NCBI RefSeq assembly: GCF_030028105.1 | Contig: NC_092374.1 | Location: forward strand, 180,127,487-180,191,486 | DNA from: Mobula birostris | Taxonomy: Eukaryota | Direction of reading: 5' to 3' | Length of the DNA: 64,000 nt | Shown here: positions 31,576 through 61,559 of the stretch, piece by piece | Position numbering within the stretch: the stretch's first letter is position 1 | How the letters are laid out: each line of letters begins with the position of its first letter | Made by a program: the position numbers and the translations under genes | The notes under the pieces: model-generated | The model's input: only the letters and a program-made list of their open reading frames with translations | The model's database searches: none | Told to the model about the DNA's origin: nothing

Positions 31576-31719
31576 CTCGCCTTCTGCAGCTGGCACCGAT
31601 AATGAAGATAATGATGATGGAAATGGCCCTGATCCCGAAGAGTGGAATCCAGCACAACCCACTGAAAATGCTGGAGCTACTGAGCAGGTCAGGCTGTATC
31701 CAAGGTTGAGTTCCCTGCA
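31576..31719 (-). CDS. Class I gene 1 stalk/TM exon ([48 protein letters not shown])
   Basis: tctttccccag|TG...CGA G|gtatgg; 144 nt; both ends align with the gene 2 TM exon (acceptor ccccag, donor GGCGAG|gta). Confidence 0.8.
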
Positions 31720-34700
31720 CTGGGGAAAGAATCAGAGAGGGTGTCTGAGACACAGGCCCCACAATCACACAGGGTACACTGCCCCGTGTGGTAACATTAC
31801 AGGGCACGCTGCCCCGTGCAGTAATGCCATGGGGCACACTGGCCCGTACTGTAATATCAAGTGGTACAGTACACTGTACAGTAATATTACAGGGTACACT
31901 GCACCATATGGTAATATTACAGGGCACACTGCCCTGTACTGTAATAATACAGGGCCCACCGCCCTGTACTGTAATAATACAGGGCCCACCGCCCTGTACT
32001 GTAATATTAGAGGGTACATTGCTCTGTACTGTAATAATATAGGGTACACGGCACAGAAAAAGTAATATTACAGGGTACACGGCCCTGTACTGTAATATTA
32101 CAGAGTACATTGCACTGTATTATAATAATACAGGGTACACTGCACTGTACTGTAATAATACAGGGTACACTGCCCTGTACTGAAATATCACAGGGTACAC
32201 AGCACCATACTGTTATATTACAGGGTACACTGCCCTGTACTGTAATATCACAGGGAACTCTGCCCTGTGCAGTAATCACCTCGGATACAACTGCCACTGC
32301 TCCGTACTGTCCCCTGTCGCAGGATAAACCAAGCCCTGCTCTATCCTGTTCCTGGATACCAGGGATTTGACCTCACTTTGAGCAGCGGCAAACTGGAGAT
32401 CAGAACCCTGAGAAGACGCAGCTCACTCAGGCTTGCCAACTGAGTCGAAAAGCTAGCGACTCATGGCAGTTTAGTGCTTTGAGCAGTGGCCTATCAGCAT
32501 TTGGGATAGATTGGCAAGAACAAATTAAATTAAGGCAGGGGCAAGCAGAGTGGCCACTGTTAGAGTGGTCACATTTTAGCTCTTCAAGGCTTCATCAGGT
32601 GAGGCTTCAGTCAGAGAAGGCAAAAAAGCTGTAGATAGAGTTTCCACCCCCACCCCAACAGTTTATTGTTCTTCCTTCTTTACATTTGCTCAGTTAGGAC
32701 AGTAGAGATGCCAGGCAGAATAGTGACATGCTCCTCTTGAGCGGTGTGGGAAGGCAGGGAGACCTCCAGTGACCCTGATGACAAGTGCATCCTGCTGCAG
32801 TTTCTAGCAATCCGCATTGAGGGGTTGGAGCTGGAACTGGATGAACTCTGGATCATTTGAGAGGCTGAGGGGGTGATAGACAGGACTAATAGAGAGGTAG
32901 TTACACTCAAGGTGCAGGACACCGGAAACTGGGTGACAGTCAGGAGGGAGAAAGGGGCTAAACAGCCAGTACAGAGTACCCTGTGGCATCCCCGTCAACA
33001 ACAGGTATATCTCTTTAGATACTGTTCGAGGGGTTGACCTAGCAGAGGAAAGTCACAGCAGTCAGGTCTCTGGCACTGAAACTCAAATGGGAAGGGGTGG
33101 GGGGAAGAAGAGGCAAGCTGTGGTGACAGGCGATTCATTAGTTAGGAGAACAGAAAGGAAGTTCCGTGAACGAGAATGAGATTCTCGGATGGTATGTTGC
33201 CTCCCGGGTGCTAGGGTCTGGGATATCTTGGATTGAGTTCTCAGCATTCTTAAGTGAGGGGATGAATAGCCAGAGGTTGTGGTCCATGTAGGTACCAATG
33301 ACAGGGGTAGGACGAGTGACGAGGGTCTGCAAAGTGAGCTCAGGGAGTTGGGAGTTGGCAGACCTCCAGGCTTGTGATCTCAGGATTGCTACCTCCACCA
33401 CGTGCTACTGAGGCCAGAAATAGGAAGAATATATAACTTAATATGCGGCTGAGGAGCTGGTGAAGGAGGCAGGACATTAGAGCTTTGGATCATTCGGCTC
33501 TCTTCCAAGGAAGCTGGGTTCTGTTTAGAAGAGATTGTTTGCACCTGAACTGGATGGGGACTAATATCCTAAAGGGGAAGTTTGCCAATGCTGCACGGGA
33601 AGGGGGGCGGGGTGCTAAAACTAGAGTTGTAGGGGGATGTGAACCAGAGTGCCAGAGCAGATAGTGCAGAGATTGTGGAGATACGTTGTTATTGAGACCT
33701 CAGATATAGTCAGGAATCAAAAGATTAAACATGATGTGACTAATGTTCTGAGCTTGTATATTTCAATGCAAGAAGTTTATAGGAAAGGCAGATGACTGCA
33801 GGGCTTGGATCAACATATGGAATTATGATAAGCTAGCCATTAGTGAGACTTGGTTGCAGGAGGGGCAGGACTGCCAGCTCAATATTCTGGGGTTCCATTA
33901 TTTTAGATGTGACAGAATGGTGGGGGGGATTAAACAAGGAGGGGTGGCGTTATTAGTCAGGGAAAATATCAAGGCAGTGCTCAGTCAGGACAGACTGGAG
34001 AACTCATCTAGTGAGGTGTTGTGGGTGGTACTGAGTAACAAGACTATATAAATATGGCTATATTACAGATCACCCAACAGTCTGAGGGATTTAGAGGAAC
34101 AAATTTGTAGAGAGATCGCAGACTGTTGCAAGAAATATAAGATTGTTTTAGTAGGTGATTTTTAACTTTCCAAATATTCCTATACTGTAAAGTTACTAGA
34201 TGGGATAGAATTTGTCAAATGTCGTAAGGAACGTGTCCTTAATCAGTACATAAAAGTCCCAATGAGAGAGTGTGCAATACTTGACCAGCTATTAGGGAAT
34301 GAGACAGGGCAGGCGACAGAAGTTTGTGTAGGGGAACACTTTGCATCTAGTGATCATAATGCCATCTGCTTCAAAGTCAATATGCAAAAAGACAGGTCTG
34401 GTCTGCAGATTGTGATTCTAAATTGAAGAAAGGCCAAATTTGATGGCATCAGAAAGGATCTGGCAAGTGTGAATTGGGACAGGCTATTTTCTGGTAAAGG
34501 CGTGATGCCTTGAAAAGGGAAACCCTTAGAGTAGAAAGCTTGTATGTGCCTGTCAGAATAAAAGGTAAAGATAACAGGGCAGGGTACCTTGGTTTTTAAG
34601 AGATATTGAGGCCCTGGTTAAGAAAAGCAGGTATAGACAGGGAGGAACAAATGAGGAGCTTATGGAGTACAAGAAATGAAAGAGAACACCTAAGGAAGAA

Positions 34701-37700
34701 ATTGGGAAGCGTAAAAGAAGGCAGAAAGTTCCTCTGGCAGATAAGGTGAAGAAGAATCCCAAGGAATTCCACAGAGCAAAAGAGGTGGGGGAGATCTTAA
34801 ATGAATTCTTTGCATCTGTTTTTACTCAGGAGACGGACACAGAGTCAATAGAAGTGAAGCAGAGTAGCATCAACTTTATGGACCCTGTATAACCCTGTAT
34901 AGATTACAGAGGAAGTTGTGTTTGCTGTCCTTAGGGCAAATTGTCCTGTCCAAGGCCGAAAGAAGCTGCAGAAGATCGTGAACGTGGTGCAGCACATCAC
35001 AAAAACCAATCTTCTGTCCTTGGACTCACTTTACACCGCACGCTGTTGGAGCAGTGCTGCCAGGATAATCAAGGACACAACCCACCCAGCCAACACACTT
35101 TTCGTCCCTCTTCCCTCCGGGAGAAGACTCAGGAGCTTGAAGGCTCGTACGGCCAGATTTGGGAACTGCTTCTTTCCAACTGTGATAAGACTGCTGAACG
35201 GATCCTGACCCGGATCTGGGCCGTACCCTCCAAATATCCGGACCTGCCTCTCGGTTTTTTTTGCACTACCTTACTTCCCATTTTTCTATTTTCTATTTAT
35301 GATTTATAATTTAATTTTTTTATATTTACTAATTTTTACTGTTTTTAATATTTAATATTTGTAATCCAGGGAGTGGGAAGCGCAGAATCAAATATCGCTG
35401 TGATGATTGTACGTTCTAGTATCAATTGTTTGGTGACAATAAAGTATAAAGTATAAATTAAAATCCCCTGGCCCTGACAGGGTGTTTCCTCAGACCCTAT
35501 GGGAGGCAAGTGCTGAAATTGCTGGGGCCCTAGGTGATACATTTAAATCATTCTTAGTGACGGAGAGGTACCAGAGGATTGGAAGATAGTCAATATTGTT
35601 CTGCTGTTTAAGAAAGGTTCTAAACAGAAACCAGGAAATTATAGGCCGGTGAGCCTGACATCAGTAGTGGGAAGGTTATTGGAAAGTATTCCAAAGGACT
35701 GGATATATAAGTATTTGGATAGATATGGACTTACTAAGTATAATCAGCATGGTTTTGTGCATGGTAGGTAGTGTCTAACCAATCTTACAGAATTTTTTGA
35801 GGAAGTCACCAGGAAAATTGATGAAGGCATTGCAGTGGATGTTGTCTACATGGACTTTAGTAAGGTATTTGATAAGGTCCCACATGGGAGGTTGGTCAAG
35901 AAGGTTCAGTCGGTTGGCGTTCAAGATGAGGTAGTAAATTAGATTAGACATTGGCTGTGGGAGAAGCCAGAGAGTGGTAGTATACAGTTGCATCTCTGAC
36001 TGATGACCTGTGACTAGTAAAGTGTTGCAGGGATCAGTGCTGGGTCTAATGTTGTTCCTCATCTATACCAATGATCTGGATGATAATGTGGTTAACTGAA
36101 TCAGCAAATTTGCAGATGACACCAAGACTGGGTTGTAGCGGACAGCGAGGAAGACTCTCGGTACTTGCAATAGATTACAGGCCATCTGGAAAAATGGACT
36201 GATGGAATTTAATGCAGACAAGTACGAGGTGTTGTACTTTGGTAGGACCAACCAGGGTAGGCTTTATAGAATGAATGTTAGGGCACTGAGGAGTGCGGTA
36301 GAACAAAAGGATTTGTGAATGGAGACCACAATTCATTGAAAGTGGCATCATAGGTAGATAGAGTCATAAAGAAAGCTTTTGGCACATTGGCCTTTGTAAA
36401 TCAATGTACTGGGTGTTATGTTGAAGTTGTATAGGACGTTGGTGCGACCTTATTTGGAGCATTATGTGCAGTTCAGGTCACCTACCCACAGGAAAGATGA
36501 ACTAAGGTTGAAAGAGACAGAAGATTTTCAAGGATGTTGCCATGCCTGGAAGATCTGAGTTATAAGGAAATGTTAAATAGGTTAGGACTTTATTCCTTGG
36601 AATGTAACAGATTGCGAGGAGATTTAATAAAGGTATACAAAATTATGAGGGGTATAGACAGGGCAAATGCAAGCAGGCTTTTTCCACTGAGGTTAGGTGG
36701 GACTACTAAAGGTCATGGGTTGAGGGTGAAAGGTGAAGAGTTTAAGGGGAATATGAAGGGAAACTTCACTCAGAGGGTGGTGAGAGTACGGAATGAGCTG
36801 CCAGCACAAGTGGTGTATGCAAGATCGATTTCAATGTTTAAGAGAAGTTTGGATAGTAGGGATAAGAAGGGCTATGGTCCCTGTGCAGGTCGATGGGAGT
36901 TGGCAGTTCCAATGGCTCAGCATGAACTAGATGGCCCGAAGGGCCAGTTTCTATGGTCTGCTTTTCTGTGACTCTACCTGAGTATCTGAGGATCTCCCCC
37001 AGCACAACTCTGGGACCCTCAGACACCTCGCCCCCACTCTCTACTGCCCCACTCGCGAGCGCACACGTGTGTTCTTGGACCCTCCCCCATGGCAACCGAC
37101 CAGCTCACCGTAATTCCAGATGATGGGATCCTTCAGTCCGCTGTGCCCCACCTGACAGGAGAACGATGCCGGGTCCGCGGGATCAATCTGCACCCACTTC
37201 CGGATCTGGTATGTGCCATTGTGATTGGGCAGGAGCCCAGTGGAGTGGGCCTCAGGGAGGATGGTCCCATTCTTCCACAGGGTCACCTCAATGGATGAGG
37301 GGCGGAAGCCAGTGGCCAAGCAGGAGAGGGCGCTGGTGTCGGCTGACAGGGTGAAGGTCACCTGGGGAGGTTCTGAGGGGAAGGAAGATGGGTGAGTGTT
37401 GATTCTATAGGGATAGAGACACCCCCAACCAGAGAGACAGAAAGAGAGAAAGAGACCCCAAAGAGGGGGAACATGGTGGAGTCCATCACACACACACACA
37501 GATCGATAGAGACCACCCAATCCTATCTCTTTATGATACTCTAACGTGCACGCACGCACACAACTGGAGACAATTTCTCATCTCTGCTCCCTGAACCCCA
37601 CACCCTCACATACCTCTCACTCCTGCCTCGCCCACACCTTCTTCCTAACTGCCCCCCGTCACCCCTTCACCCCCCCCATTCACTACAACCCACCACCCTC

Positions 37701-40700
37701 ATCAGCGATGTTCAGTTCCCTACCCCAATATCCCGGAATTGCAACCTCCCCCGACCACTCACCCACTCGCAGTTGCTTCCTTCCGTAAGCCAGGAACTTC
37801 CTCAGCCACCGGACACAGTCCACCTTCAGGAAGTACTTCCATTTCCCAATGTTGACCATGTCCTGATCCCACTGGTGTTTAATTCTCTCTGCCCACATTA
37901 CAAATGCGTCCCACTCTGTGTGGTCCTTGTCCAGGCTCAGCAGGTCGTCTCCATCCCAGCTGTACTGAGTGAAGCCTTTCGTGGTCCCATTCTCCCTCAG
38001 GTCACAGCCAATCACCTGCTGGAGTGTGTGGATTTCTGTCAACAACATAAGAAGTCGGCGAATGTTTAACGAAACTCATGGTTCTTGTTCTGTGTTCAGA
38101 GAAGCACACGTGTCCAGTCAAAGGACCCTTAAATAAATGAGACCATCTGTATGGACTCACAGAGCTAGAAAAAGGCCTTTCAGCCCATCACATCTATGCT
38201 GATGTCTCATCCCGCTTAAGTTCATTTTACCCAGGGTATCAATACTTTGTGCAGCAGGAGCACAGCACATGAAAAACACAATGGAGATAGTTTAACATGT
38301 ACTTGAATTAACATAAATTATGCACCACTAAACATAAGGACACTTGTACAAGCTGATGGAGAAAAGAAATACAGTCCTCTTGTAGATGTCCTTGATGGTG
38401 TGAAGGGCTGTACCTGTGATAGAACTGGCTGAGTTTACCTCTCTCTGCATCCTCTTGTGTTCCTGTGTACTGGAGTTCTTTCATACCAGGCAGTGATGCT
38501 TTCCACCGTACATCGGCAGAGGTTTGTCAGAGTCTTTGGTGAAGTGCAGAATCACCTAAACTTTTAAGAAAGGAGGGACATTGGCATGCTCTCATTGACG
38601 GTTGCGTCTAAGTGCTGGCTTCAGGATAGACCCTCTGAGATGTTGCTTCAATGACCCTTCACCGTAAGCCTTTCGGTGAGGACTGGTGTGTTCCCAGTAC
38701 TTGGTCCATAACTGAGTTCTGCCTTACAATTCAAGTGCTCACCCAGAGAATTAATGTTGTGGACAGCTAACTAATCTATTAATTGCATGCCTAAACTAAA
38801 TTAATGCCCTCTGCCTTCACAACAACCGAATCCTCCAATTCCCAGCACAATCATGTACCTACGAAGAGTCTCTTCAGCAGCTCCAGTATTTCTGCCTCCG
38901 TCACCACTGCAGGCAGTGCTTTTCAGGCACCCACCACTCACCATGCACATCTCCTTTCAACTTACCCCTCCCACTGGGAATGCATGCTTTTCGACCCTGG
39001 GAGCAAGATGCTATCTGTCTCTCTGTTTATACCTCTTGTAAACATACAGTAAATCAGGGCTTCCCTCTGCCTCCACTGTCCAGAGAAAACAACCCAAGTT
39101 TGTCTCACCTTTCCTTACGGCACGTGGCCTCTAATCCAGGCGGCATTGTGGCAAACATCTTCTGCGCCGCCTGCCAAGTCTCCATATCCTTACCACAACA
39201 GAGTGACTGCAACTGAATCTCCTGTAATTTGCACTGCCCCAATTTCATACCCTCCTGCAGGGTCTACACTTCCCCTTATCTATAGCTCTCTTAAAACTTA
39301 AGGAACAGTGATCTCCATTGCTTAAACGTTTTCCCACAGAAAGGTCAGTCACCTGACCAGGCTGATTTTGCAGCCTTGGATGCCATATATCCCCTCCTTT
39401 AGTTGGACTATTTACACTTACTTAAGGACCCATCCCCAGTTGTCCCTAACAAATAAACCCCATGCACTAAGGAGGTCCCCGTTTATATTGAGGAAACTGA
39501 AGTAACTCCCAACAACAAAACCTTTTGTTTTCCCGTCTTCCCTGAATCTGCCCGCATGCCTGTTTCTCAACGGCTATTGAAGGGTCTGTTGTTTGTTGTC
39601 CCATTAGGTTGCTTGCACCTTTCTTATTCTGAGTTTTATTCCTATACACTCAGTGGCCACTTCATGAGATATGTCTTGTACCTCAGACAGGAGTGCTGCT
39701 GCTGTATCCTAACCATTTTAGGGTTTGAGGAGATGTGTGTTCAGAGATGCCCTTCTGTAAGCCACTATGGTAACACATGGTTAGGGTTACTGTATCCTTC
39801 CTTTTCTGCTTGAACCTGTCTCAACAATCTCCTCTGACTTCTCTCATTAACAAGGCAATTTCAGTCACAGAATGCCTCCCACTGGATGTTTTCTGTTTTT
39901 CACGCCATCCTCTGTAAACTCTAGAGAACGTTGTGAGTGAAAATCCCAGGAGATCACTTTCTGAGATACTCAAACCATCCAGTCTGACACCAACAATCAT
40001 TCCACGGTCAAAGTCATTTAGATCACATTTCTTCCCAAATCTGATGTTTGATCTGAGCAACAACTGAACCTTTTGACCATGTCTGCATGCTTTTATGCAT
40101 TGAGTTGCTACCACATGATTGGCTGATTAGATATTTGCATCATTAAGTGTACCTAATAAAGTGGCAACTGAAGTTAGACTCAGTGGGTGAGCCCTCAGTG
40201 ATGTCCCCTCTGAACACTCTGCTGTGATATTGTCCCCGATTAATATTGCAGCTCTTGGCCCTCCTTTACCTTCTCATTCTGGCTTCTCGCTCATGATGGA
40301 AGGGTCTTGGCCCAAAATGTCAACCGTTCATTCCCTTCCGTAGACTCTTGCTCTCATTGACCTCCCATTCTGTTATGATACACACCCAACTGCTCCAGCT
40401 TCCGACATTTAGACCTCTAACTCTCTGGAATACGGCTAGCTGGCGCGGCCCCTTTAAGAGTTCAGGACTATCCTGCTAACTGGCAATCACAGTTTGGGCA
40501 CCAAGAATTCAGTACTTAAAGAGACCTGAACCGAGGTTCAGTGCTCAATGGTGAGCCTAACTAGAAATATTGTCTAGCACAGCCCTTCTCAACCTCCTTG
40601 CCCTGGAGAAACCGTTGAAATAGTTTTCAGATCTCAGGGAACCCCTATGTAAAAATTATTATATCTACAGCTCACGGTACGTTAGTGTGATCAGTAATTT

Positions 40701-46700: not shown

Positions 46701-49700
46701 AAGTCTCTTGCTAGATCTTCCTTCAGTTAGTCCTGACGAAGGGTCTCAGCCCGAAACATCGACTGTACCTCTTCCTAGAGATGTTACCTGGCCTGCTGCG
46801 TTCACCAGCAACTTTGATGTGTGTTGCTTGAATTTCCAGCATCTTCAGAGTTCTTAGTGTTTACATTTTTAAATAAACTGTCCCATGTGTGCATTCAGTG
46901 CGCACATACATTTGTCACAGGAAAAAGATTTGCACAACATAAGATTTTTGCGCACACTGACTACTAAAAATTAGAGGGAACATTGGTCTGGAGCCTCAGG
47001 ACCCAAAACACTATGTTTAGAAACAGTTATTACCCCTCAGCCATCAGGTTCTTGAGCAAGAGGGGATAACTTCACTCAACTTCACTCGCCCCATCACTGA
47101 ACTCTTCCCACAAACTGTAGACTTACTTCCAAGGACGTATGATAATGTACATGTACTTTGATAATAAATGTAGTTTGAACTTTTAAATTTAAAATACATG
47201 TTGACAACATCTACCACCCTGCCCTTATCAATCCTCTTCAAAAATTAATCACATTTGTGAAGCAGGATTTTCCACACACACATCCATGTAAATTACCCTT
47301 TATCAGTCTTTACCTTTCCAAAACCTGGTAGATCCCTCATTATTGCCTTATGTCTACTGGCACCTTCCTTGTTGTAATGTAGATATATTACAACACCCCA
47401 TTGCTCATTTCCCTTCACTCATTAACTTCCAAAACATTCTCCGCAAATACAGATGAAAAATATTCATTTAGCACCTTGGCCATCTCCTGTGGCACTTCAG
47501 AATGATGACCACACCGAACCTAAAAGGGACTATGCTGTCCTTGGTTAGCCTTTTGCTCTTTTACTTCTAGAATCTCAGTAAATTACCTCTATTTGTGGTG
47601 TCAGTCTGCTACTGAAGGAGAATTCCAGATATTTGTCACTTCCATTCTGAATACTTATAGAAGTACATATCCTGACATTCAATATTAGTCACCCCATAAT
47701 TTTTTGGGGGAGGGGACACGTGTAACCTAAGGGCCTGTGTCCTATGAGACAGTCTCACAACACTTGGTTCAAATAGACCACCATGAGTGGCATTGGTGCC
47801 TCATTAACTGGATAACACGGTGAATGTACTGATGGGCATTGTGCTCACTCTGAATAATTTTATGAATAAAAGTTAATTTTGAAATTAAAACCAAGTTGTC
47901 TGCAGGTTCAATTCTTGCCCGTCACTCCGCCACGTTTGAAGCACTGACCAGCCACTCACTTAAATCTAATCACTGGGAAACATGTGTTGACTGATTTGAT
48001 GCAAAGATTCAACCCCAATTTATAAAAGTCACGCTGAAATTAAACTAGTCAGATAGGGACTCACCACCCAACTGATTGGTCAAAGACGTTATGAAGAGAA
48101 TAAGTTTTTTCTGGGTCCTCTCCCACTCCTCAGCAAGTGACAACTTCTTCTGCCATTCGGCCCCCTCGCTCTTCACCATCCACTGCTCCTGGGGAACCAG
48201 CTTCCGCTTACTGTCGTAAACCACAAACTGGACACTATCCACATTGGTGACAGCCACTAACTGTGGAAAATCCGGAATCTCAGTCACGGACGTCAGGAGA
48301 ATTCGGAGAGAGTGAGATTCTGAAACAAAGAGAGAGGGGAAAATCAGGGCACAAAACAAGGTAACCTATCGCAGCCGATACAATGCGGAGACAAAGTCAC
48401 AGGCTGGTTCCTTACTGGGTTCCATTATCCCCGTCTGCTGTCAGCCTCCTAACACAGGGAAGTAGTCGATGATTTCCGTGATCCCGCCTGAAGCCCTTGT
48501 GCTCCAGTGGTCAGTTTGTTGGAGACGAGACGTAACATAACATCACAATAGGGAACATGTCACTGGGGCAATGACACAGCCTTATCCGACGTTGGTCTTC
48601 ACAGAGGTTGCTGTAGGTCGGGATGCGCACGCACACGCTCAACACACAGATCGTCACACATATTCCTGTTCCAATTAGACAGGGAAGTTATAGTGGGGTA
48701 CAGGAACCATGGTGTACAAAGGCTGGAATAAATCTAGTCAAGAAGAAAAGAAAAGCTAACAAAAGGTTCAGAGATTTAGAGATCTAGAAGATTATAAGGC
48801 TAACAGGAAGGAGCTTAAGAAGGAAATTGGGAGAGCCAGAAGGAGCCATGAGAAGGCCTTGGCGGGCAGCATTAAGGGAAACCCCAAGGCATTCTACAAG
48901 TATGTAAAGAGCAAGAGGATAAGACGTGAAAGAACAGGACCTATCAAGTGTGACAGTGAGAAAGTGCGAATGGAACCGGAAGAAATAGCAGAGGTACTTA
49001 GTGAATACTTTGCTTCAGTATTCACTGTGGAAAAGGATCTTGGTGATTGTAGTGATGACTTGCAGCAGACTGAAAAGCTTGAGCATGTAGATATTAAGAA
49101 AGAGGATGTGCTGGAGCTTTTGGAAAGCATCAAGTTGTATAAGTCACTGGGACCGAATGAGATGTGCCCCAGGCTACTGTGGGAGGCAAAGGAGGAGATT
49201 GCTGAGCCTCTGGCGATGATCTTTGCATCATCAATGGGGACGGGAGAGGTTCCAGAGGATTGGAGGGTTGTGGATGTTGTTCCTTTATTCAAGAAAGGGA
49301 GTAGGGATAGCCCAGGAAATTATAGACCACTGAGTCTTACTTCAGTGGTTGGTAAGTTGATAGAGAAGATCCTGAGAGGCAGGATTTATGAACATTTGGA
49401 GAGGCATAATATGATTAAGAATAGTCAGCATGGCTTTGTCAAGGGCAGGTCATGCCTTACGAGCCTGATTGAATTTTTTGAGGATGTGACTAAACACATT
49501 GATGATGGTAGAGCAGTAGCTGTAGTGTATATGGATTTCAGCAAGGCATTTGATAAGGTACCCCATACAAGGCTTACTGAAAAAGTAAGGAGGCATGGGA
49601 TCCAAGGGGACATTGCTTTCTGGATCCAGAATTGGCTTGCCCACGGAAGGCAAAGAGTGGTTGTAGACGGGTCATATTCTGCATGGACGTCGGTGACCAG

Positions 49701-51446
49701 TGGTGTGCCTCAGGGATCTGTTCTGGGACCCTTACTCTTCGTGATTTTTATAAATGACCTGATGAGGAAGTAGAGGGATGGGTTGGTAAGTTTGCTGATG
49801 ACACAAAGGCTGGAAGTGTTGTGGATAGTGTGGAGGGCTGTCAAAGGTTACAGCGGGACATTGATAGGATGAAAAACTGGGCTGAGAAGTGGCAGATGGA
49901 GTTCAACCCAGATAAGTGTGAAGTGGTTCATTTTGGTAGGTCAAATTTGATGGCAGAATATGGTATGAATGGTAAGACTCTTGGCAGTGTGGAGGATCAG
50001 AGGGATCTTGGGGTCCGAGTCCATAGGACGTTTAAAGCAGCTGCGCAGGTTGACTCTGTGGTTAAGAAGGCATACGGTGTATTGGCTTTCATCAATCGTG
50101 GAATTGAATTTATGAGCCAAGAGGTAATGTTGCAGTTATATAGGACCCTGGTCAGACCCCACTTGGAGTACTGTGCTCAGTTCTGGTCGCCTCACCACAG
50201 GAAGGATGTGGAAGCCATAGAAAGGGTGCAGAGGAGATTTACAAGGATGTTGCCTGGATTGGGGAGCATGCCTTGTGAGAATAGTTTGAGTGAACTTGGC
50301 CTTTTCTCCTTGGAACGACAGAGGATGAGAAGTGACCTGATAGAGTTGTATAGGATGAGAGGTATTGATGGTGTGGATCGTAAGAGGCTTTTCCCCAGGG
50401 CTGATATGGTTGCCGCAAGAAGACACAGGTTTACTATGCTGGGGATTAGGTACAGAGGAGATGTCAGGGGTAAGTTTTTTTATGCAGAGAATGCTGAGTG
50501 CGTGGAATGGGCTGTCGGCAACGGTGGTGGAGGTGGATACGATAGGGTCTTTTAAGAAACTTTTGGATAGGTACATGGAGCTTAGAAAAATAGAGGGCTA
50601 TAGGTAAGCCTTGTAATTTCTAAGGTAGGGACATGGTCGGCACAACTTTGTGGGCCGAAGGGCCTGTGTTGTGCTGTAGGTTTTCTATATTACAATGTTT
50701 CTATACACAAATACACAAGCACGCTCACACACATACCCTCATCCTCAAGCCCCTCACCACCGACACCCTCCCCTCTCAACGTGAAGTGGAAGTAACAAGC
50801 TGCTGTAACTGATAGGGGTGGGAGGGCTGGTGTCCAATCAGAAGTAGGTTGTGTGTTACGTGTCTCGGAGTGTTGCGAGGATGAAGTTTTGAGTTGGAAT
50901 ATGTTAATTAGAATAAAAGAGCCAGTCAGGGCCCTCTGTCCGCTGATGTTAAAGTGAAAGTTGAGTTTATTTTCATCCGCACAAGTACGGGTGAGCTCAG
51001 TTGCAGTGACAAACTTAATTCCAGCAGCATCACGGGCAGATAGCATCCGAGACGCAAGCTTCACAAGAAAGACACATACATATATACATACATACACACA
51101 CACACACAGATTATGCAAAAAGAACATAATTAGAACAAGAAAACACATACAGACAGACATACACACACACACTGGTCCACTGACCTTCTCCACTCCCTCT
51201 CCCCATTTCTCTTCCCCACGCACGCTCCGGTTTCAAGCTCCATTTCGATGGTCAGCTCGTCTCCGTTCGGACCCCCTGTCATTCACCCTAGCATGACAAT
51301 CCTAACTCCCCCCCTCGCTGTCGGAGATAAACACTTTGCTCAGCCTCTGAAACCCTCCCACCCTGTCACCCACCTGCGGAGGCAGCGTCGCACAGGAAGG
51401 CCAACACTATCAGCCCCACCACTCTGCGAGAACTCGTCCGCTCCAT
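31576..51446 (-). CDS. MHC class I-like heavy chain gene 1 (nonclassical); leader, a1, a2, a3 and TM exons; cytoplasmic exons unresolved
   Basis: Exons 51374-51446, 48065-48319, 37763-38035, 37109-37372 and 31576-31719 all join in phase 1 with canonical splice sites and no stops; canonical a2 C101/C164 and a3 Ig-C1 cysteines are present. Confidence 0.9.
31769..32279. repeat. 30-bp minisatellite, ~17 units, consensus acagggtacactgccctgtactgtaatatt
   Basis: Direct 30-bp periodicity (one 31-bp unit); internally palindromic. Confidence 0.92.
32380..36970 (+). mobile_element. Near full-length decayed CR1 LINE (ORF1 with SGNH-esterase-like region, ORF2 APE-RT), with another LINE 3' end nested at about 34944-35460
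   Basis: [10 protein letters not shown]...CCLPGARV esterase remnant, [16 protein letters not shown] remnants, [15 protein letters not shown]-terminus; the nested segment ends in an (aaagtat) tail. Confidence 0.85.
37109..37372 (-). CDS. Class I gene 1 alpha3 (Ig-C1) exon (PPQVTF...[10 protein letters not shown]...[10 protein letters not shown]...WNY)
   Basis: ccctcag|AA CCT...TAC G|gtgagc; 264 nt. Confidence 0.93.
37763..38035 (-). CDS. Class I gene 1 alpha2 exon ([12 protein letters not shown]...[19 protein letters not shown])
   Basis: gacag|AA ATC...GTG G|gtgagt; 273 nt; HTLQ-x3-GC, YSWDG and CV-x-WL motifs. Confidence 0.93.
40581..41690. mobile_element. Non-autonomous hAT (Charlie/Buster-like) remnant
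   Basis: cagcccttctcaacc...gggaacccc terminus; minus-strand transposase N-terminus remnant CQFLKRR...[14 protein letters not shown]; other end eroded. Confidence 0.55.
44306..46850. mobile_element. Penelope-like retroelement cluster: pLTR(+) 44306-44770, element(-) 44862-46234, inverted pLTR(+) 46234-46850
   Basis: Minus-strand peptide [12 protein letters not shown]...[17 protein letters not shown]...[14 protein letters not shown], typical of PLE RT; mutually inverted pLTR copies. Confidence 0.85.
44675..44710 (+). ncRNA. Minimal type I hammerhead ribozyme motif in a Penelope pLTR; other copies at 44915-44950(-), 46729-46764(+) and 62322-62357(-)
   Basis: AGTC-CTGACGA-A-GGGTCTCAGCCC-GAAA-CGTC-GA(A/C)T: catalytic core, stem II, 1-bp palindromic stem III, stem I. 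Confidence 0.7.
48065..48319 (-). CDS. Class I gene 1 alpha1 exon ([32 protein letters not shown]...SLTNQLG)
   Basis: tttcag|AA TCT CAC...GGT G|gtgagt; 255 nt; SHSLR, P-x-FP, VD-x-VQF, YDS and WM motifs. Confidence 0.92.
48725..50690 (+). mobile_element. Relatively young 5'-truncated CR1 LINE (antisense in class I gene 1 intron 1)
   Basis: 304-aa ORF 48859-49773 and 244-aa ORF 49821-50555 are consecutive RT parts separated by one frameshift. Confidence 0.92.
51374..51446 (-). CDS. Class I gene 1 leader exon ([24 protein letters not shown])
   Basis: ATG at 51446, hydrophobic core, ASA cleavage motif, G|gtgggt phase-1 donor; joins to give ASA/ESHSL. Confidence 0.8.
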
Positions 51447-51560: not shown

Positions 51561-52299
51561 CAGAGGCTTGAACACCCGATGTGTTTCTTGCCAAATATTC
51601 ACGCGTATTTATGCACAAGCGCAATGTAAAACTTACTCGCAGCGATGACCTGTTCGGCTTGTCACCGAATAAACTTCCACATACATTACCTGTAGAAAGT
51701 GTACTGACTGGCTGCATCACGGTCTGGAACTGCGAACGCGCGGGTGCAAAGCAGCCGGAAAGAATACGCAGCCCTGTATATCACGGGCACGAAGCTAAAA
51801 TTGGATGCATCGGTATCGCAACTGAGTAAAGACATGAGGGAGACGTGAGAAAGGAGCTGGCCAAAGTTGTTTGGAAGCGGACACTGGCAGGGATGACGGT
51901 AGAGCAGCAATGGCTGGAGATTCCGGGAGTAACTCGGAAGATACCGTGTCAGTTCATCCTAAAGTAGTAGTATTTTAAAGGGCGGGTGACTTACCCGCGA
52001 CTGGCAAGGGGAAGCCAAAGACAGCACAAAACCAAAAGAGAGGGCATAAAATATAGCAAAAAATAATGGAAAGCTAGAGTATTCGGAAGCCATCTAAAAA
52101 GCAATTCCGTTATGAAAAAGCAACACACTATCTGCAGATTTTCTCGTGTTAAATTCTGAAAAAGGAAACGGAAGAGATTATGGAGCCATTAGCAGTGATA
52201 AAACATAGAATATATTGCATACAGTTCTGATTGCCCCACTACAAGAAGGATGTTGAGGCTTTGGAGAGGGTGCAGAAGATGTTTAGCTGGATGCTGCCT

Positions 52300-53250: not shown

Positions 53251-53489
53251 TCAGCCATGACTCAGTGATGGCTTCAACATCACACGTCAACCTATAACTG
53301 CGCTACAAGCACACATATCTACCTTATTCCATATACTGCACACATTCAAATATAACACCTTCAGTCCTGTATTCATCCTTTTCCATTTTGTCTGCCTTTT
53401 ACATTGCAACTCATCCCATTGTCTACAATTTTGCCCCATCATCAATCTCTCATTCCTAGGAGTCTCACTACATACTTAGATTCTGAGAA

Positions 53490-54110
53490 CACTCAGTCAT
53501 CTTTTATTGTCATTTAGAAATGCATACATGCATTAAGAAATGATACAATGTTTCTCTGGAGTGATGTCACAGAAAACAAGCTGGACCAAAGACTAACACT
53601 GACAGAACCACATTAATTATAACATATAGTTACAGCAGTGCAAAGCAATACCATAATTTGATAAAGAACAGACCATGGGCACAGTAAAAAAAAGCCTCAA
53701 AGTCCCGAGTCGATCGATTCCGGAATCCCCAATAGCAGGTGGCAAAAGGGAGAAACTCCCTGCCATAAACCTCCAGGCACCGTCAACTTGCCGATGCCTT
53801 GGAAGCAGCCGACCCCAGCCGACACTGAGTCCATCCGTGAGAAAACTTTGTGCTTCTGACCAGTCTCTCTGATATAGCCTCCCGAACGCCATCCTCTGCC
53901 AAGCGCCTTCGACCTCTCCCTGGCCGCTGAAACATGCAAAGCTGAGGATTTTGGGGCCTTCTGCTCCGGAGATTCCGGTTACCACACAGTAGCAGCGGCA
54001 GCGAAGCGGGCATTTCAGAAGTTTTCCAGATGTTCTCACGTCTGTCTCCATCAAATCAGAATTGTGCACAGTCTCCTATTTGACAGATAACAGATATTCA
54101 TCAACGAAGT
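53490..54110 (-). repeat. Interspersed LINE 3'-UTR-type repeat; related copy at about 41990-42360
   Basis: Shared ~150-nt block gattttggggccttc...ccatcaaatcagaattg. Confidence 0.6.
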
Positions 54111-54959
54111 GGCTATATTGCCTCTCTTGTAAACTCATCCTCAGCACCATCACTCCAGTTCCCATCCCCCTGCCAAATTATTTTAAACCCTGCTGAACAG
54201 CTCTAGCAAGGATATAAATCCAAACCTAAGCTAGTCAATATAGGACACCTGTGATTGCTACTTCCCATGGTTCCTTTTGACACAGAAAAGGCCATTCAGC
54301 CCATCAAACCTACACCAGCTGTTTTTAAAATTGTATAGCTACGTTTATACAAATGGATACAATATCGCAACAATACTCTTATTATACACATCTCAATATT
54401 TCATAAATACCACTATTTACAGTTACAATTATCACTGTCCGCAGCCCACCCTAGCCCTTGAGGGTCCTATCTTGAAAGGTGTATTGGTTTTAAATTGTAG
54501 ACAGTTCAGTGGACCAACACAACTACAGGAATACAAGACATACCAAAACGCATTTGGGTCATACATATTATCTGGCTCAGAGTGTTTACGAATGGCAGGA
54601 TAAGGTTCCAGTCGAAGGTGCAGAGGCAGGCATTAGGGGGAGGGATTGATTAACATTTTAAACTAATGACTCTCCTATTAGAATTGGGAAGGATTTGAAA
54701 ACAAAAGCTGTGGCAATGTGGAAGGGAGAGGGTGGAGACGGAGAGAGAGGGTGTTGAAGGTGGACAAATCCCATCTGGTTCTGCACAGCATGAAGGGAGG
54801 ATATACAGGTTTGGACTGGTCGTGTGAGTTGCGAATAAGCGACATGCATCTGGCATGTTATGTACAGTAACTGCAGTGTGTGGGAGCTGATGGTACCAGC
54901 ACAGATCCACAGAGACCCAATCCAGAATCAAGCAGTGTTGACTTGAAGTGATGAGCTGA

Positions 54960-55355
54960 AACATAGAAACATAGAAAATAGGTGCAGGAGTAGGTCATTC
55001 GGCCCTTCGAGCTTGCACCACCATTCAGTATGATCATGGCTGATCATCCAACTCAGAACCCTGTACCAGCCTTCCCTCCGTACCCCCGATTCCTTTAACC
55101 GCAAGGGCCATATCTAACTCCCTCTTAAATATAGCCAATGAACTGGCCTCAACTGTTTCCTGTGGCAGAGAATTCCACAGATTCACCACTCTCTGTGTGA
55201 AGAAGTTTTTCCTAATCTTGGTCCTAAAAGGCTTCCCCTTTATCCTCAAACTGTGACCCCTCGTTCTGGACTTCCCCAACATCGGGAACAATCTTCCTGC
55301 ATCTAGCCTGTCCAATCCCTTTAGGATTTTATACGTTTCAATAAGATCCCCCCAA
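54960..55355 (-). mobile_element. CR1 LINE 3' end
   Basis: [23 protein letters not shown]...NFFTQRVVNLWNSLP and (tttctatg) tail. Confidence 0.85.
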
Positions 55356-56969
55356 TAGGAAATGTCCCCATAGTCTCTCAGTCCTCTCCTCGGACAACTT
55401 CTCGTCCTCACTGACTGCCAGTGAGATCACTGCGGAAGAGAGATCAGTCACATCAGAGTTATGCAAACCGTTGGGCCCAGAGTCAACTGGACTTCCTGTG
55501 CACCACCCCATTCCCCACCCCTCCCTCAGACACTCCCTCTCCCCCCCATCATCTCTCGGCTTCCATCACTGGCACTCCCCGGAAAACACCATCAGCAACG
55601 TCTCCTCCCCCCCTACCCCCCAGCCCCAATCCCAGTGAAGCCCATCAGACCCAGGGAAAGGGAATCAAAAACCAGAGGGCAGAGTTTAAAGGTGAGAGAG
55701 GAAAGAGCAACTTCAGGACACAGAGGGTGATGGGAATTTGGTACGAGCTGCCAGAGGATACGATAACATTTGGTCCAATACATGGGATGTTAGTCAAATG
55801 GACACCGTGGTTGGCATTGATGAGACTGGCTGCTTCTGTACTCTGTTACTCTGCATATTTAATGCTTCGACTGTGAATGCTTGGAATGTACGTGTGCGTG
55901 TTTGTTGGTTGGTGTAGATGCAATGAGCCAAAGGACATGCTTCCTTGCTGTTAGGGTCTACACCAGTTGAGACCTAGGAGATGAGAACAAGATGTCACCA
56001 TCCTGAGCCAGCGGAATTTTCTTCCCGATAGGATTGGGTGTGTATCCATGACTGGGTTCAACAGATCGTTGGATATTAGAGGAATTAAGGGATTTGAAGA
56101 TATTTCATATAGATCAATACTTCCTTACACTACTGATGGAGACTATTTGGCCCATTTAGTGCTTACCAGCTGATGGAGTAATCTCATTGTCTCACTAACC
56201 CATTGGCCCCACATTCCAATTTTCTACCCCTCACCCACACTACGGAGGCAAAGGAGGGGCACACAGAGCTGATACAGTAACGAGCATCTGTAATGAGCCG
56301 GTTGGGAGCCGAGTGTCAATCAATACCATTCCTACCTGAAGTACTGCCGAGGGAACTTGCTGCAGATCCTGCATCATCTGTGGCTGCGAATGGAAGGGCA
56401 AGAGTTAGAATCCGTTCACTGTCAGGGACGGAGAGGGAGGGAGTCACTGACCGTGGACTGGGAAAGAATCAGGGAGAGGGGCTTGGAAATAGAGAGAGAA
56501 CCACAGTAGGTGCCCGATGGGTGGAAACCATTCCCCTGAATAATTCCTTTCTGTGTGTCCCTTGTGTGTCCCCAGGGGCGCTCAGCTCCCCATCCCCTCC
56601 GGGGGGGGGGGGTGCTGTGCTCCCCATCCCATAGGGGCTGTATTCCCCATCCTAACAACTTACTTGTGTACATATTTCCCCAGACCACACTTGATTCTTT
56701 GGCTGATCAGAAACATTCTCTGACCCCTGGTTCCTGACCACTCCTGCAGTGGGAACTGTCCCTCCCCACGTGCCCCACACAGTTCACCACTTTTAATCCA
56801 TGTCTCACCCTTCTCCCTCTGTTCCCTAACCAGCAACCTGGCTTCTCCATTCCATCCCCAGCAGCAACGTTCCCCATTCTAGAACCCCTGAGGTGAACTG
56901 CTCTGAAGCCCTTTGATCTTCCCCGAGTTGTGTGAACTCCCCCCCCCCACCGCAACTCTGGAACTTGTC

Positions 56970-56980
56970 TCATGGCTCCA
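56970..56980 (-). CDS. Class I gene 2 last coding exon (MEP*)
   Basis: Strong acceptor tctgtctctccctctctcag|TG GAG CCA TGA in phase 1. Confidence 0.5.
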
Positions 56981-59900
56981 CTGAGAGAGGGAGAGACAGA
57001 CACACAGACCCACGAGGAGTTTATCGTCACATAATCAAGGGGGAGGAGAGGAGCACTGATATTGAACTTACTCCGTGTGGCATTGTACTTCCTCTTCACT
57101 CCCACTGCGAAAACAAGGAGACCTGGTGAGTGCAGCTGATGGACTGGGATAGACAAAACTGACCCCCACAGACTCCACCCCTCCCTTTAGGATCCTCACA
57201 CTCTACCCCATCTCTCTCCATTTAGAACGCTCACACTCCCCCAAAGGATGCTCCCCCCATCTCTTCCAACTCCCCTTTAGAACCTTCACACTCCCCCAAC
57301 AGACCCTCCCCTCATCTCTCCCAACCCTCCCCCTCCCCCAACAGATCCTCCCCTCATCTCTCCCAACCCTCCCCCAACAGATCCTCCCCTCAGCTCTCCC
57401 AACCCTCCCCCTCCCCCAACAGATCCTCCCCTCATCTCTCCCAACCCTCCCCCTCCAACAGATCCTCCCCTCATCTCTCCCAACCCTCCCCCTCCCCCAA
57501 CAGATCCTCCCCTCAGCTCTCCCAACCCTCCCCCCTCCCCCAACAGATCCTCCCCTCATCTCTCCCAACCCTCCCCCTCCAACAGATCCTCCCCTCATCT
57601 CTCCCAACCCTCCCCCTCCCCCAACAGATCCTCCCCTCAGCTCTCCCAACCCTCCCCCTCCCCTCATCTCTCCCAACCCTCCCCCAACAGATTCTCCCCC
57701 ATCTCTCCCAACCCTCCCCCTCCCCCAACAGATCCTCCCCTCATCTCTCCCAACCCTCCCCCTCCCCCAACAGACCCTCCCCTCATCTCTCCCAACCTTT
57801 TAGAACCCTCACACTCCCAACAGATCCTCTCCTCACACTCCTCCCAACAGATCCTCCCGTCATCTCTCCCAACCCTCCCCCTCCCCCAACAGATCCTCTC
57901 ATCTCTCCCAACCCTCCTTTAGAACCCTCCCCCTCCCCCAACAGACCCTCCCCTCATCTCTCCCAACTCCCCTTTAGAACCCTCACACTCCCAACAGATC
58001 CTCCCCTCTCTCCCAACTCTCCCCCTCCCCCAACAGACCCTCCCCTCATCTCTCCCAACTCCCCTTTAGAACCCTCACACTCCCAACAGATCCTCCCCTC
58101 TCTCCCAACTCTCCCCCTCCCCCAACAGACCCTCCCCTCATCTCTCCCAACTCCCCTTTAGAACCCTCACACTCCCAACAGATCCTCCCCTCATCTCTCC
58201 CAACTCTCCCCCTCCCCCAACAGATCCTCCCCTCATCTCTCCCAACCCCCCTTTGGAACCCTCACACTACCCCAACAGATCCTCCCCCCATCTCTCCCAC
58301 CCCCCCATGCTCAGTTCTCCCCAGCCCTACCTCGCCACCTGTACACAGCACCAATGGTGATGGCCAGAACCATGAGGATGGCCAGGAGCCCGACTATTAA
58401 TAGGATCCGGGATTGAGCTTCCCGCTCTGGGGAGAGAATTGGAGAGGATGTAGGAAGTTCACAGTTACACAGGCCGCAATCACCAAGGGCACACCACACT
58501 GTATTTTTAATTGCACCGGCTACACCACCCTGTGTGGTAATTTGCCAAGAAGCACTGGCCACGACTGTAATAACACAGCACACCAGATCAGACTGTAATG
58601 ACCAAGGTCTGGCCACCTGTCAGACTACGGAATGCACCAATCTGCCCTGGAATAACCCACTGACCTGCACTGAAATAATTCAGGATACAGGTGTCCCCCG
58701 CTTTTTGAACGTTCACTTTATGAAACCTCACTGTTACGAAAGACCTACATTAGTACCCTGTTTTCGCTTTCAGAAGGTGTTTTCACTGTTATGAAGAACG
58801 GCAGCGCGCCACAAAAAAACAGCGCGCCATAAAAGGCAGCGCGCCCCGAGCAGCCGCTCTGCCCCGGATTCGGAACGGCATTGCTTAAACACGTTGCATT
58901 GAGCAGCCGTTAGCAAGATGAGTCCTAAGGTGTGGGAAAAGCCTGAAAGAGTAAGAGTGTTACACTTAGCGTAAAACTAGACATAATTAAGCATTTCGAT
59001 CGTGGTGAACAAAGCAAGGACAAAGTGAGTTTGGCTTGTGGAAGCTGACGAAGATGATGATGAAGAGGTTTTGGCATCCCATGACCAAGAACTGATAGAT
59101 GAAGAGCTGATGCAGTTGGAAGAGGAAAGGATAACAATCGAAACCAAATGCAGAAAGTGAAGCAGCTGCGTGAGATTTTCGCTGCAATGATAAAGTACGA
59201 CTTTAATTTTGAAAGGGTACGTAGCTTTAGGGGATATTTGCAGGATGGTTTGAGTGCTTACAAACAACTGTATGATAGAAAAATGCGCGAGGCTCAGCGG
59301 TCAAGCAAGCCTTCCACATCAGCCACAGCAGACGACAAACTTCGACCTTCGACATCGAGGCGGGCAGTCATAGGAGAAGATGAGTTGCCTGCCCTGATCG
59401 ACGATGAGATGACACCCCCGTGTCCCACCACCCCGACAGCCGGGCCCCGGACAGATACTGTACCGATTCGCGAAGAACGCAGTGGTAGCTGGGAGGCACA
59501 CAGCACATCTTTAAGAAAAATGCCCAAATAAACATGCTAAATAATTAGGTGCCGCCTGGCACGTAATTGTCGACCCAGATCAGAGGCGATGCAATTGGCA
59601 ATCTGCGCCGACATTTACGTGCCGGGCAGCACCTAATTAATTAGCATGTTTATTTTGGCTTTTTTCTTAACGATGTGCTGTTTGCCTCCCAGCTACCGCT
59701 GTGTTCTTCGCGGCAATGTATCGGGTCGGCGGCCCGGAGGGTGGGGGCCACTGCACCACCCAGCCTGCGATGACTCAGCCTAACACACCATCATCAGTGT
59801 GCTCAGCGCTGTTTTCCCAATTCCGGTAAGTGATACTCACTGTACATACATTACTTCTACTTTATATAGGCTGTGTATTTTTATGTGTTATTTGGTAGAT

Positions 59901-61559
59901 TTGGCAGCTTCATAGTTTACAGGTTACTGGAGAGCGCGTTTATGCCAACAGCGCTTGCGTGAGATTTTCTGCCGAGAGCACTTACGTGAGATTTTCGCTA
60001 CGGAGATCTGTGCAGGTAATCGTTGTAGAGAAGTATTTATACTTTATACAGGCTGTGTATTTATCATATCATTCCTGCTTTTACTACATGTTACTGTTAT
60101 TTTAGGTTTTATATGTTATTTGGCATGATTTGGTAGGTTATTTTTGGGTCTGCGAACGCTCACAAAATTTTCCCATGTAAATAAATGGTAATTGCTTCTT
60201 TGCTTTACGACATTTCGGCTTACAAACCGTTTCATAGGACACTCTACCTTCGGATGGCGGGGGAAACCTGTATACCAGCCCTGCTCTGTCCTGTCCCTTG
60301 GCTCGACCTCCTTTTGTGAAGTGTCTGAGAATCTCCCCCTGCACAGCTGTGGGCCCCCCTCAGACAACTCCCCACACAACTCCCACTCCTCACCCGTGAG
60401 TGCAGCCGGACCCTCCCTCAGGGTGACCGATCAACTCACTGTAAATCCGGGTGACGGCGTCCTCCAGTCCTCTGTGCTCCACCCGACATGAGAACGGGCC
60501 CGGGTCTGTGGGGTCCACCGACACCCACTTCCGGATCTGGTGGGTGCCGTCGTGATTGGGCAGGAGCCCACTGGAGTGGGTCTCGGGTAAGATGGTCCCA
60601 TTCCTCAACAGGGTCACCTCGATAGATGGGGGGTGGAAGCCAGTGGCCAAGCAGGAGAGGTGCAGGCTGTCGGCTGAAGGCGTGATCGTCACCTGGGGAG
60701 GCACTGGGGAATGGAAGAAAGATAGAAGGAGGGGGAGGGAGAGAAAAGAAAAGAATGTTTAGAGATCAAGATAGAGGTGACTTTAATTTTCTACAGATTG
60801 ACTGGGACTTCCACTGTAAAAGGACTAGATGTGATAGAGTTTATCAAATGTATTCAGGAAAGGTTCCTTGCTCAGTACATAGAAGTCGCAATGAGAGAGT
60901 GGGCGATACTTGAGCTGCTGTTAAGGGACAGGGCAGGTGACAGAAGTTTGTAGGTTCAACGACAGGAAGAGTGTGAGGGACAGGGAGGGGGAGAGATGGC
61001 GACTGAAGGCGGGATGGTGAGAGGGAGAGAGATGGAGAGACAGTGAACACCCCACCCACACAGAGTCTGAGAGGAACAGAGAATCTGGTAGAGCCCAACC
61101 CAGACAGAGAGAGAGAATCCCCTAAAGAGAGGATTCCCCCAACACTCTCATACCACTCAGAGACCCTCTCAGCAATCACCACTCTCCCATCCCTCACTCC
61201 ATCACTGTTAGAACTCACCTCCCCCCACCCTCATTGTTTCATTTCCTGACCCACAACCCTGGGATCTACCCCTCGCCACCACTCACCCACTCGCGATTCC
61301 CTCTCTCCGTATTCTATGTATCTCTGCAGCCATTGCACACACTCCTTCTCCAGGAAGTCCTTCAGTCTCTTAACACGGACCTCATCACCAGTGCACTGGT
61401 TTTTAATGTTCTGTGCCCACGATGATGGTGTCACCCAGAACATGTGGCCCTGGTCAAAGCGCATCACATCCTCGCCGTCCCAGCTGTAATGGGAGAAGCC
61501 ACTTGAGGTCCCGTCCTCCTTCAGATCACAACCAAATATCTGCTGCAGGGTGTGGAAAT
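56970..61559 (-). CDS. MHC class I-like heavy chain gene 2 (nonclassical), partial: a2, a3, TM and two cytoplasmic exons; a1 and leader not in the window
   Basis: Exons 61287-61559, 60440-60703, 58331-58426, 57072-57104 and 56970-56980 join in phase 1 and end ...GVKRKYNATRMEP*; the a2 and a3 exons are the same lengths as in gene 1 (273 and 264 nt). Confidence 0.85.
57072..57104 (-). CDS. Class I gene 2 cytoplasmic exon 1 (VGVKRKYNATR)
   Basis: tgttttcgcag|TG...CGG A|gtaagt; 33 nt; basic residues plus Tyr, typical of class I tails. Confidence 0.75.
57200..58310. repeat. C-rich ~40-bp minisatellite (cccaacagatcctcccctcatctctcccaaccctccccctc) in the class I gene 2 intron
   Basis: More than 20 variant units filling the TM-to-cytoplasmic intron; G-rich on the transcribed strand. 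Confidence 0.9.
58331..58426 (-). CDS. Class I gene 2 TM exon (KREAQSRILLIVGLLAILMVLAITIGAVYRWR)
   Basis: tctctccccag|AG...CGA G|gtaggg; 96 nt; uninterrupted hydrophobic helix. Confidence 0.88.
58688..60270 (+). mobile_element. Defective Tigger/pogo (Tc1/mariner) DNA transposon
   Basis: TIRs caggtgtcccccgc / gcgggggaaacctg with TA on both sides; CENP-B-like HTH remnant (KLDIIKHFDRGE) and C-terminal FERVRSF...YKQLY. Confidence 0.8.
60440..60703 (-). CDS. Class I gene 2 alpha3 exon ([24 protein letters not shown]...FSCRVEHRGLEDAVTRIY)
   Basis: ttccccag|TG CCT...TAC A|gtgagt; 264 nt; 60/87 aa identical to gene 1 a3 (hand count). Confidence 0.92.
61287..61559 (-). CDS. Class I gene 2 alpha2 exon (FHTLQQIFGCDLKEDG...ECVQWLQRYIEYGERESRV)
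   Basis: gatag|AT TTC...GTG G|gtgagt; 273 nt; 41/90 aa identical to gene 1 a2 (hand count). Confidence 0.92.

Follow-up and report, generated by a model that had tools for sequence, protein, structure and literature searches.

What class I lineage of the cartilaginous-fish major histocompatibility complex (MHC) do two neighbouring ray genes belong to when almost every residue that would hold a peptide by its ends has been replaced, and what might such molecules display? The question is raised by a 64,000-nucleotide stretch of the giant manta ray genome (Mobula birostris; GCA_030028105.1, contig NC_092374.1), hereafter the window, which carries two intact MHC class I genes, both on the minus strand and in head-to-tail order, with gene 2 lying upstream. 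A first-pass annotation, made from the letters alone, had singled out the interval 31576-61559, which runs from the end of the gene 1 transmembrane (TM) exon to the first base of the gene 2 α2 exon, and had read the pair as one nonclassical family that was either an undescribed lineage or a ray relative of UEA and UCA. We find that both genes are ray members of the known elasmobranch UBA lineage, and are neither a new lineage nor UEA/UCA-like. Taking all the evidence together, we consider it very likely that the window holds the C4-linked UBA cluster of the manta: two tandem, intact and transcribed nonclassical class I genes that adjoin a complement C4-like gene in tail-to-tail orientation. 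Some form of unconventional display would be their most likely role.

Exon structures, Pfam matches and alignment agree that these are two tandem class I genes of a single nonclassical family without the residues that fix peptide termini, as the annotation had claimed. Both genes carry the markers of the class I fold, namely an α1–α2 platform, an immunoglobulin C1-set α3 domain, the C101-C164 pair and the α3 disulfide cysteines, and the α1 exon of gene 1 is indeed short, at 85 codons. The translated exons of gene 1 are 100% identical to the NCBI protein XP_072115087.1 (P0209), and those of gene 2 are 100% identical to the NCBI model XP_072115084.1 (P0293, 351 amino acids). Expression, which the annotation had suggested checking, was confirmed by spliced contigs of both genes in four M. 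birostris RNA runs, and the joints fall precisely on the predicted exon borders. A pseudogene reading was ruled out by the open frames, the consensus splice sites, the spliced RNA and the conserved orthologues.

Residues were called in a computed alignment against the classical class I molecules of Triakis and nurse shark (6LUP), using HLA numbering, and all the calls that had been made by eye were reproduced. Gene 1 has I7, L84, L123, I143, Q146, W147, F159 and F171, and Tyr59 has gone by a one-residue deletion (EGAEW). The α2 domain of gene 2 has V123, I143, Q146, C147, F159 and Y171, its α1 domain (taken from P0293) has F7, W59 and Q84, and the motif YSWDG is common to both genes. One of the calls, Y123>L, is uninformative because shark classical class I itself varies at position 123 (S, F, L or Y). 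Among the positions Y7, Y59, R/Y84, T143, K146, W147, Y159 and Y171, gene 1 retains W147 only and gene 2 retains Y171 only, and on these residues both genes are classed as nonclassical. In addition, NQL replaces the otherwise invariant N86-x-S/T sequon in genes of the gene 1 type, a change that the two Mobula species share with Hemitrygon and with the Logan protein P0239.

Lineage and map position of the pair

In a careful maximum-likelihood tree of α1–α3 from 62 sequences, eight ray sequences formed one clade (support 100/100) inside a 27-tip UBA clade (100/99) that contains Heterodontus O19480 (HeFr) and Ginglymostoma O19479 (GiCi) and stands apart from shark UAA, from the UAA-type genes of rays and from a conserved group resembling UDA. 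The same UBA clade was recovered from α1+α2 only (100/97), and an approximately unbiased (AU) test rejected a topology in which every ray class I gene falls in one clade (p = 0.016). The UBA signature, consisting of K63, L66, I143, non-Y59 and non-K146, is common to the ray clade. The nearest relative of gene 1 is found in Mobula hypostoma (95% identity over α1–α3), where a single protein model (P0289) fuses the counterparts of gene 2 and gene 1 in the same tandem order. Other close relatives are Hemitrygon akajei P0229 (80-86% per exon), P0239 and the sawfish proteins P0218 and P0220, and the closest non-ray matches are all shark UBA, the family of O19480 and O19479. Nesting within UBA, together with the position beside C4 described below, disposes of the claim that the pair is a new lineage, so that the analysis adds none to the chondrichthyan class I catalogue.

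The family is multicopy in rays, with two tandem copies in M. birostris and M. hypostoma and three in sawfish. Gene 2 and sawfish P0220 group together without gene 1 (100/98), which shows that the duplication that gave rise to genes 1 and 2 is older than the Mobula/Pristis split. Strict 1:1 orthology between gene 1 and sawfish P0218 is absent from the best tree and was not rejected (AU p = 0.089).

The map position of the pair can be compared with published maps. Verissimo et al. 2023 (PMC10751288) assign only UBA genes to the class Ib cluster flanked by c4, sawfish included, whereas they place UEA together with UDA in a second class Ib cluster, near b2m/brd2. Supplemental File 3 of the same study lists, for Pristis pectinata, LOC127585854, LOC127585956 and LOC127586083 as MHC-Ib genes beside a C4-like gene, tail to tail, and the LOC127585956 protein falls in one 90% cluster with P0218. 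The manta pair is the syntenic counterpart of this published C4-adjacent cluster; because it adjoins C4 and not b2m/brd2, it does not occupy the map position of UEA. The sawfish cluster resembles that of the manta in its tail-to-tail arrangement with a C4-like gene, in containing the closest non-myliobatiform relatives of the pair (P0218 and P0220), and in its groove residues (I/M143, Q146 and F159, with C147 in P0220 and W147 in P0218). It differs in gene number, in the retention of R84 and the N86 sequon by P0218, and in groove identity, which is only 43-55% to the manta genes.

Several points weigh against this placement and what we draw from it. The α3-only tree disagrees, joining the ray clade to ray and squalomorph classical-type α3 domains (84/95), and UBA membership therefore rests on α1–α2, the ligand-binding domains, together with synteny. 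Within UBA, the ray group falls among the galeomorph sharks and is not sister to all shark UBA, perhaps as a long-branch artefact; a long branch (0.42) leads to the ray clade. The lineage labels were assigned by us: the database names of O19480, O19479 and O19481 are just 'MHC class I protein', and we took the first two as UBA and the third as UAA from a review citation, anchor residues and copy number. The 2025 review in question cites Bartl 1997 as the source of UBA; among the sequences of that study, O19481 has all the classical anchors and groups with Triakis UAA, whereas O19480 and O19479, without Y59, T143 or K146, fall together with multicopy shark genes. UEA and UCA are excluded indirectly, by positive UBA membership and map position instead of direct sequence comparison; among the 150 best α2-search representatives and the 120 best profile hits, every chondrichthyan sequence was of the UAA, UBA or UDA type. 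A divergent catshark protein, P0105, was tried as a UEA/UCA candidate and proved to be a UAA/UDA-like isoform without α3. Last, the function of both genes is inferred entirely from sequence.

The α3 tree and the long branch would fit a different history, in which ray classical (UAA) genes gave rise to a new class Ib lineage confined to rays, which came to resemble UBA by convergence in α1–α2. We regard this as improbable, given that the full-length AU test rejects an all-ray clade, that the α1+α2 tree supports UBA strongly, with K63, L66 and I143 held in common, and that the C4-adjacent position is the one published for the UBA cluster. Clustering of α3 by taxon is, moreover, a common outcome of exon homogenisation among class I genes. 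Less probable still, judged by UBA membership and map position, is a ray family of the UEA or UCA kind, the other option that the annotation had raised. Its appeal lies in the hydrophobic anchor replacements and in a groove hydropathy mean of 0.54-0.63, against 0.14 in shark UAA and shark UBA; the shark UEA and UCA genes, reportedly the subject of work by Almeida et al. in 2021, are said to be nonclassical, with anchors replaced by more hydrophobic residues. However, the pair nests in UBA and maps beside C4, about seven charged residues remain in the groove, and its hydropathy overlaps the upper ranges of UAA (0.64) and shark UBA (0.61). The 2025 review also describes UEA as more ancient than the UAA/UBA pair.

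Assignment to UBA means that this lineage reaches stingrays and mantas, where it forms an ancient and conserved unit of two genes next to C4, and it supports the published view that the C4-side class Ib cluster predates the split between sharks and rays.

Groove composition and candidate modes of display

How far the ray genes have departed from their relatives is best seen against shark UBA (Bartl et al. 1997; multicopy in Mustelus, Scyliorhinus, Hemiscyllium and others), which shares with the manta pair its clade, K63, L66 and I143, the loss of Y59 and K146, multiple copies, linkage to C4 and a three-domain class I structure. Shark UBA mostly retains Y7, R84, W147, Y159, Y171 and the N86 sequon. 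By contrast, ray UBA genes have lost Y7, Y59, T143, K146 and Y159, and in most of them R84 and Y171 are gone as well; position 147 is Cys in gene 2, and genes of the gene 1 type are without the N86 sequon; identity between ray and shark α2 is only ~50-56%, and ray α3 does not group with shark UBA α3. Ray UBA thus appears, from its residues, to be remodelled further than shark UBA, which we consider modestly new: no description of the extent of this remodelling, or of a missing N86 sequon such as that of the gene 1 type, was found in the literature searched.

The groove was scored over 42 positions, the established list of those that contact peptide in HLA-A2, as mean Kyte-Doolittle hydropathy. 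The mean was 0.63 for the gene 1 type (range 0.60 to 0.66; ~26 of 42 positions hydrophobic) and 0.54 for the gene 2 type (0.42 to 0.83; ~25), compared with 0.14 for shark UAA (-0.40 to 0.64; ~20), -0.12 for ray UAA-type genes (-0.64 to 0.26; ~18) and 0.14 for shark UBA (-0.16 to 0.61; ~22). The hydrophobic groove that the annotation had anticipated was therefore borne out in part: the ray grooves are moderately more hydrophobic than those of classical genes and shark UBA, but about seven charged residues remain in both ray types (in gene 1, K62, K63, E69, K76, D150, K155 and D163). On this composition, the ray groove is moderately shifted towards the hydrophobic and is not CD1-like.

Conservation, measured at the protein level as groove versus non-groove identity, follows a pattern of its own. 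In gene 1, 38 of 41 groove positions are conserved against Hemitrygon (rest of α1–α2, 78%; p = 0.04) and 39 of 41 against P0239 (rest, 75%; p = 0.004), and the groove positions of both genes are identical between the two Mobula species. Overall, groove conservation was 93-100%, versus 75-94% elsewhere in α1–α2. Triakis alleles and the Mobula UAA-type genes show the reverse pattern, with the groove as the more variable part. Ray UBA has therefore shed its peptide-clamping residues almost wholly while its groove is still under constraint.

A confident AlphaFold2 model of the gene 1 ectodomain (pLDDT 91.3) has the expected strands and helices of normal length, and its best Foldseek match in the PDB is shark class I 6LUP (E 4e-29), followed by MR1 and fish class I; such fold matches do not, on the model, discriminate between types of ligand. 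Classical UAA (Triakis, nurse shark 6LUP and the ray M4R434 type) is the best PDB match by sequence as well as fold and has the same exon structure and disulfides, but it keeps all of Y7, Y59, R84, T143, K146, W147, Y159 and Y171, and in it the groove is the variable part, not the conserved one. MR1 is the second-best match in structure and sequence (~34% identity), and several NCBI isoforms of the pair are named 'MR1-like'. MR1 has Y7 and R9, whereas gene 1 has I7 and L9, and there is no orthology with MR1.

In the scheme that we propose, each heavy chain would fold as a normal class I molecule, presumably pair with β2-microglobulin and reach the cell surface, and splice forms without the TM exon would be secreted. 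Neither molecule would clamp the N and C termini of a peptide in the classical way, because Y7, Y59, R84, T143, K146 and Y159 are replaced, along with Y171 in gene 1 and W147 in gene 2. Canonical presentation of diverse peptides seems unlikely on these residues, and a conserved unconventional ligand would be the most likely cargo. Each molecule would then either display a single conserved ligand of a non-canonical kind, whether a small hydrophobic molecule or an unanchored peptide, or be recognised directly itself, in both cases by an invariant T- or NK-type receptor. Binding of a non-peptide ligand, which the annotation had proposed, is likewise something that we infer.

Two narrower accounts of function divide much of the same evidence. 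One would have the pair display lipid or another non-peptide hydrophobic ligand, as do CD1 and chicken YF1*7.1, and we hold this to be possible but doubtful. All the peptide-terminus clamps are lost, the groove of gene 1 presents I7/L9/L22/I99/L123/I143/F159/F171 and is hydrophobic at 26 of 42 positions compared with ~20 in classical molecules, and it is conserved across species; on the other hand, the charged groove residues remain, and sequence and fold are nearest to classical class I and MR1, not to CD1. The other account dispenses with cargo: the groove would be without ligand and the molecule itself would be a ligand for innate receptors or have a non-immune role, as in MIC, HFE, ZAG and FcRn. 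The loss of every terminus anchor, the missing N86 glycan site of the gene 1 type, the odd TM exon and five-residue tail of gene 1 and the predicted soluble isoforms all speak for it. We nonetheless rate it as somewhat unlikely, because the predicted helices are normal in length and the residues that line the groove are better conserved than the remainder of α1–α2, which suggests contact with something.

Returning to the proposed scheme of unconventional display by both genes, the gene 1 type (Mobula, Hemitrygon and P0239) stands out by the loss of seven of eight anchors and of the N86 site, a groove near-frozen across a deep divergence, a remodelled TM exon containing an Arg, and its five-residue tail. 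Within the peptide-loading complex, calnexin and calreticulin use the N86 glycan for quality control; because its site is lost, the gene 1 type may fold outside that complex. A tentative extension, which we offer with more reserve than confidence, is that the gene 1 type represents a myliobatiform offshoot of UBA that could have turned into a functionally new sort of class Ib molecule, with one conserved non-peptide ligand or none, and an invariant receptor. The pair would in any case be reasonable candidates for asking whether invariant, non-peptide or unconventional antigen display existed in cartilaginous fish.

Gene structures, transcripts and neighbouring sequence

The exons of both genes and the extent of the C4-like gene are listed in Table 1. 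Gene 1 spans 51446-31038 in full, in six coding exons, every border of which is consensus AG/GT. Gene 2 has its last base at 54056, and the window contains its exons from α2 to the tail; coordinates of the NCBI model place the leader and α1 exons ~3.7-6.3 kb past the window end, with the start ~6.3 kb past it. Its α1 exon was not found in the readable part of 61560-64000 (excluding an N run at 63735-63970), and no further gene was called within 10 kb upstream.

Table 1. Exons of the two class I genes and extent of the C4-like gene, in window coordinates.
Feature	Coordinates	Strand	Length or content	Support
Gene 1 leader	51446-51374	-	24 codons + 1 nt; ATG; donor G/GTGGGT	tblastn 100% to P0209
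Gene 1 α1	48319-48065	-	255 nt, 85 codons, short	Pfam MHC_I E 6e-9; 100% to P0209
Gene 1 α2	38035-37763	-	C101-C164 retained	Pfam MHC_I E 2e-20
Gene 1 α3	37372-37109	-		Pfam C1-set; RNA contigs
Gene 1 connecting peptide/TM	31719-31576	-	48 amino acids	RNA joint 31719->37109
Gene 1 last coding exon	31054-31038	-	(D)WWFD + stop	coding-sequence end agrees with NCBI model
Gene 2 α2	61559-61287	-		Pfam MHC_I E 9e-20; 100% to P0293; RNA joint 60703->61287
Gene 2 α3	60703-60440	-		Pfam C1-set; RNA joints at both ends
Gene 2 connecting peptide/TM	58426-58331	-		RNA joints 58426->60440, 57104->58331
Gene 2 cytoplasmic exon 1	57104-57072	-	GVKRKYNATR	RNA joints
Gene 2 cytoplasmic exon 2	56383-56336	-		RNA joint 56383->57072; loose end runs into last exon
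Gene 2 last coding exon	54075-54056	-	(G)DCAQF + stop	matched by RNA loose end at 56335
Complement C4-like gene, 3' part	3555-23320	+	1685-amino-acid product; tail to tail with gene 1	MG1-4, ANATO, A2M, TED

The connecting-peptide/TM exon of gene 1 is unusually long compared with the 32 amino acids of its gene 2 counterpart, has an Arg within its hydrophobic stretch, and is conserved in Hemitrygon and M. hypostoma; the cytoplasmic tail that follows is DWWFD. A 35-nt piece of this exon (31664-31698) matches 11141-11175 at 83%. Just upstream of it, in the α3–TM intron, lies a minisatellite-like array (31700-32400) with long repetitive open reading frames (ORFs) on both strands, and the leader–α1 intron of gene 1 contains ORFs of a long interspersed nuclear element (LINE)/CR1-type reverse transcriptase (48859-50555, plus strand). 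In gene 2, the intron between the TM and cytoplasmic exons holds a G-rich tandem repeat (57203-57728, minus strand) with ORF units GRVGRDEGRICW / GGLGEMRGGSVGG, and no RNA contigs cover the repeat.

All four gene 2 joints in Table 1 have GT..AG ends on the gene strand, and the sequence of a loose RNA end at 61560 is that of the end of its α1 exon (...FIMSQTNHSR). For gene 1, contigs of 1271-1337 nt carried the joint between the α3 and TM exons, also with GT..AG ends, in 4/4 runs, and the share of 37000-38100 represented by words in the RNA runs was 0.44, as expected for gene 1 α2 and α3 without the intron. In gene 2 the contig word depth, a poor gauge of expression, was 261-899; in gene 1 it was 13-88. 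A stretch of very high RNA contig depth, up to ~26,000, lies in the α3–TM intron of gene 2 (58600-60430) and probably reflects dispersed repeats transcribed elsewhere.

Gene 2 has two sites at which RNA contigs from three runs depart from the assembly: T>C at 58373 replaces a Met of the TM segment by Val, which is the M. hypostoma state, and T>G at 60489 is synonymous in α3. Across the four RNA runs, gene 2 α2 and gene 1 α3/TM had no listed difference from the assembly, and these two were the ones found in the rest of gene 2. Among the NCBI isoforms of genes 1 and 2, P0290, P0291 and P0288 skip the TM exon or read through past α3, and forms without the TM exon are predicted from their sequences to be secreted; P0292 and P0294 have alternative first exons and are without a signal peptide.

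The C4-like gene includes exons for A2M_recep (~3555-3737) and NTR/C345C (15849-16106), with the last exon ending at ~23320, and its only PDB matches are to the complement C4 gamma chain (E 0.007). LINE reverse-transcriptase ORFs occupy its last introns (18.2-22.6 kb), and another of its introns contains a long proline/threonine/tyrosine-rich repeat of PTYLPTQPT units (9430-10130, plus strand).

A further observation concerns the shark sequences collected for the trees. P0270, P0262, P0268, P0269 and P0057, from catshark, zebra shark and bamboo sharks, have all eight anchors and groove residues that are identical across species (Q63, S70, H99, E116 and Y123). This group looks like a conserved single-copy lineage of the UDA type, and it attaches to squalomorph classical genes in the tree.

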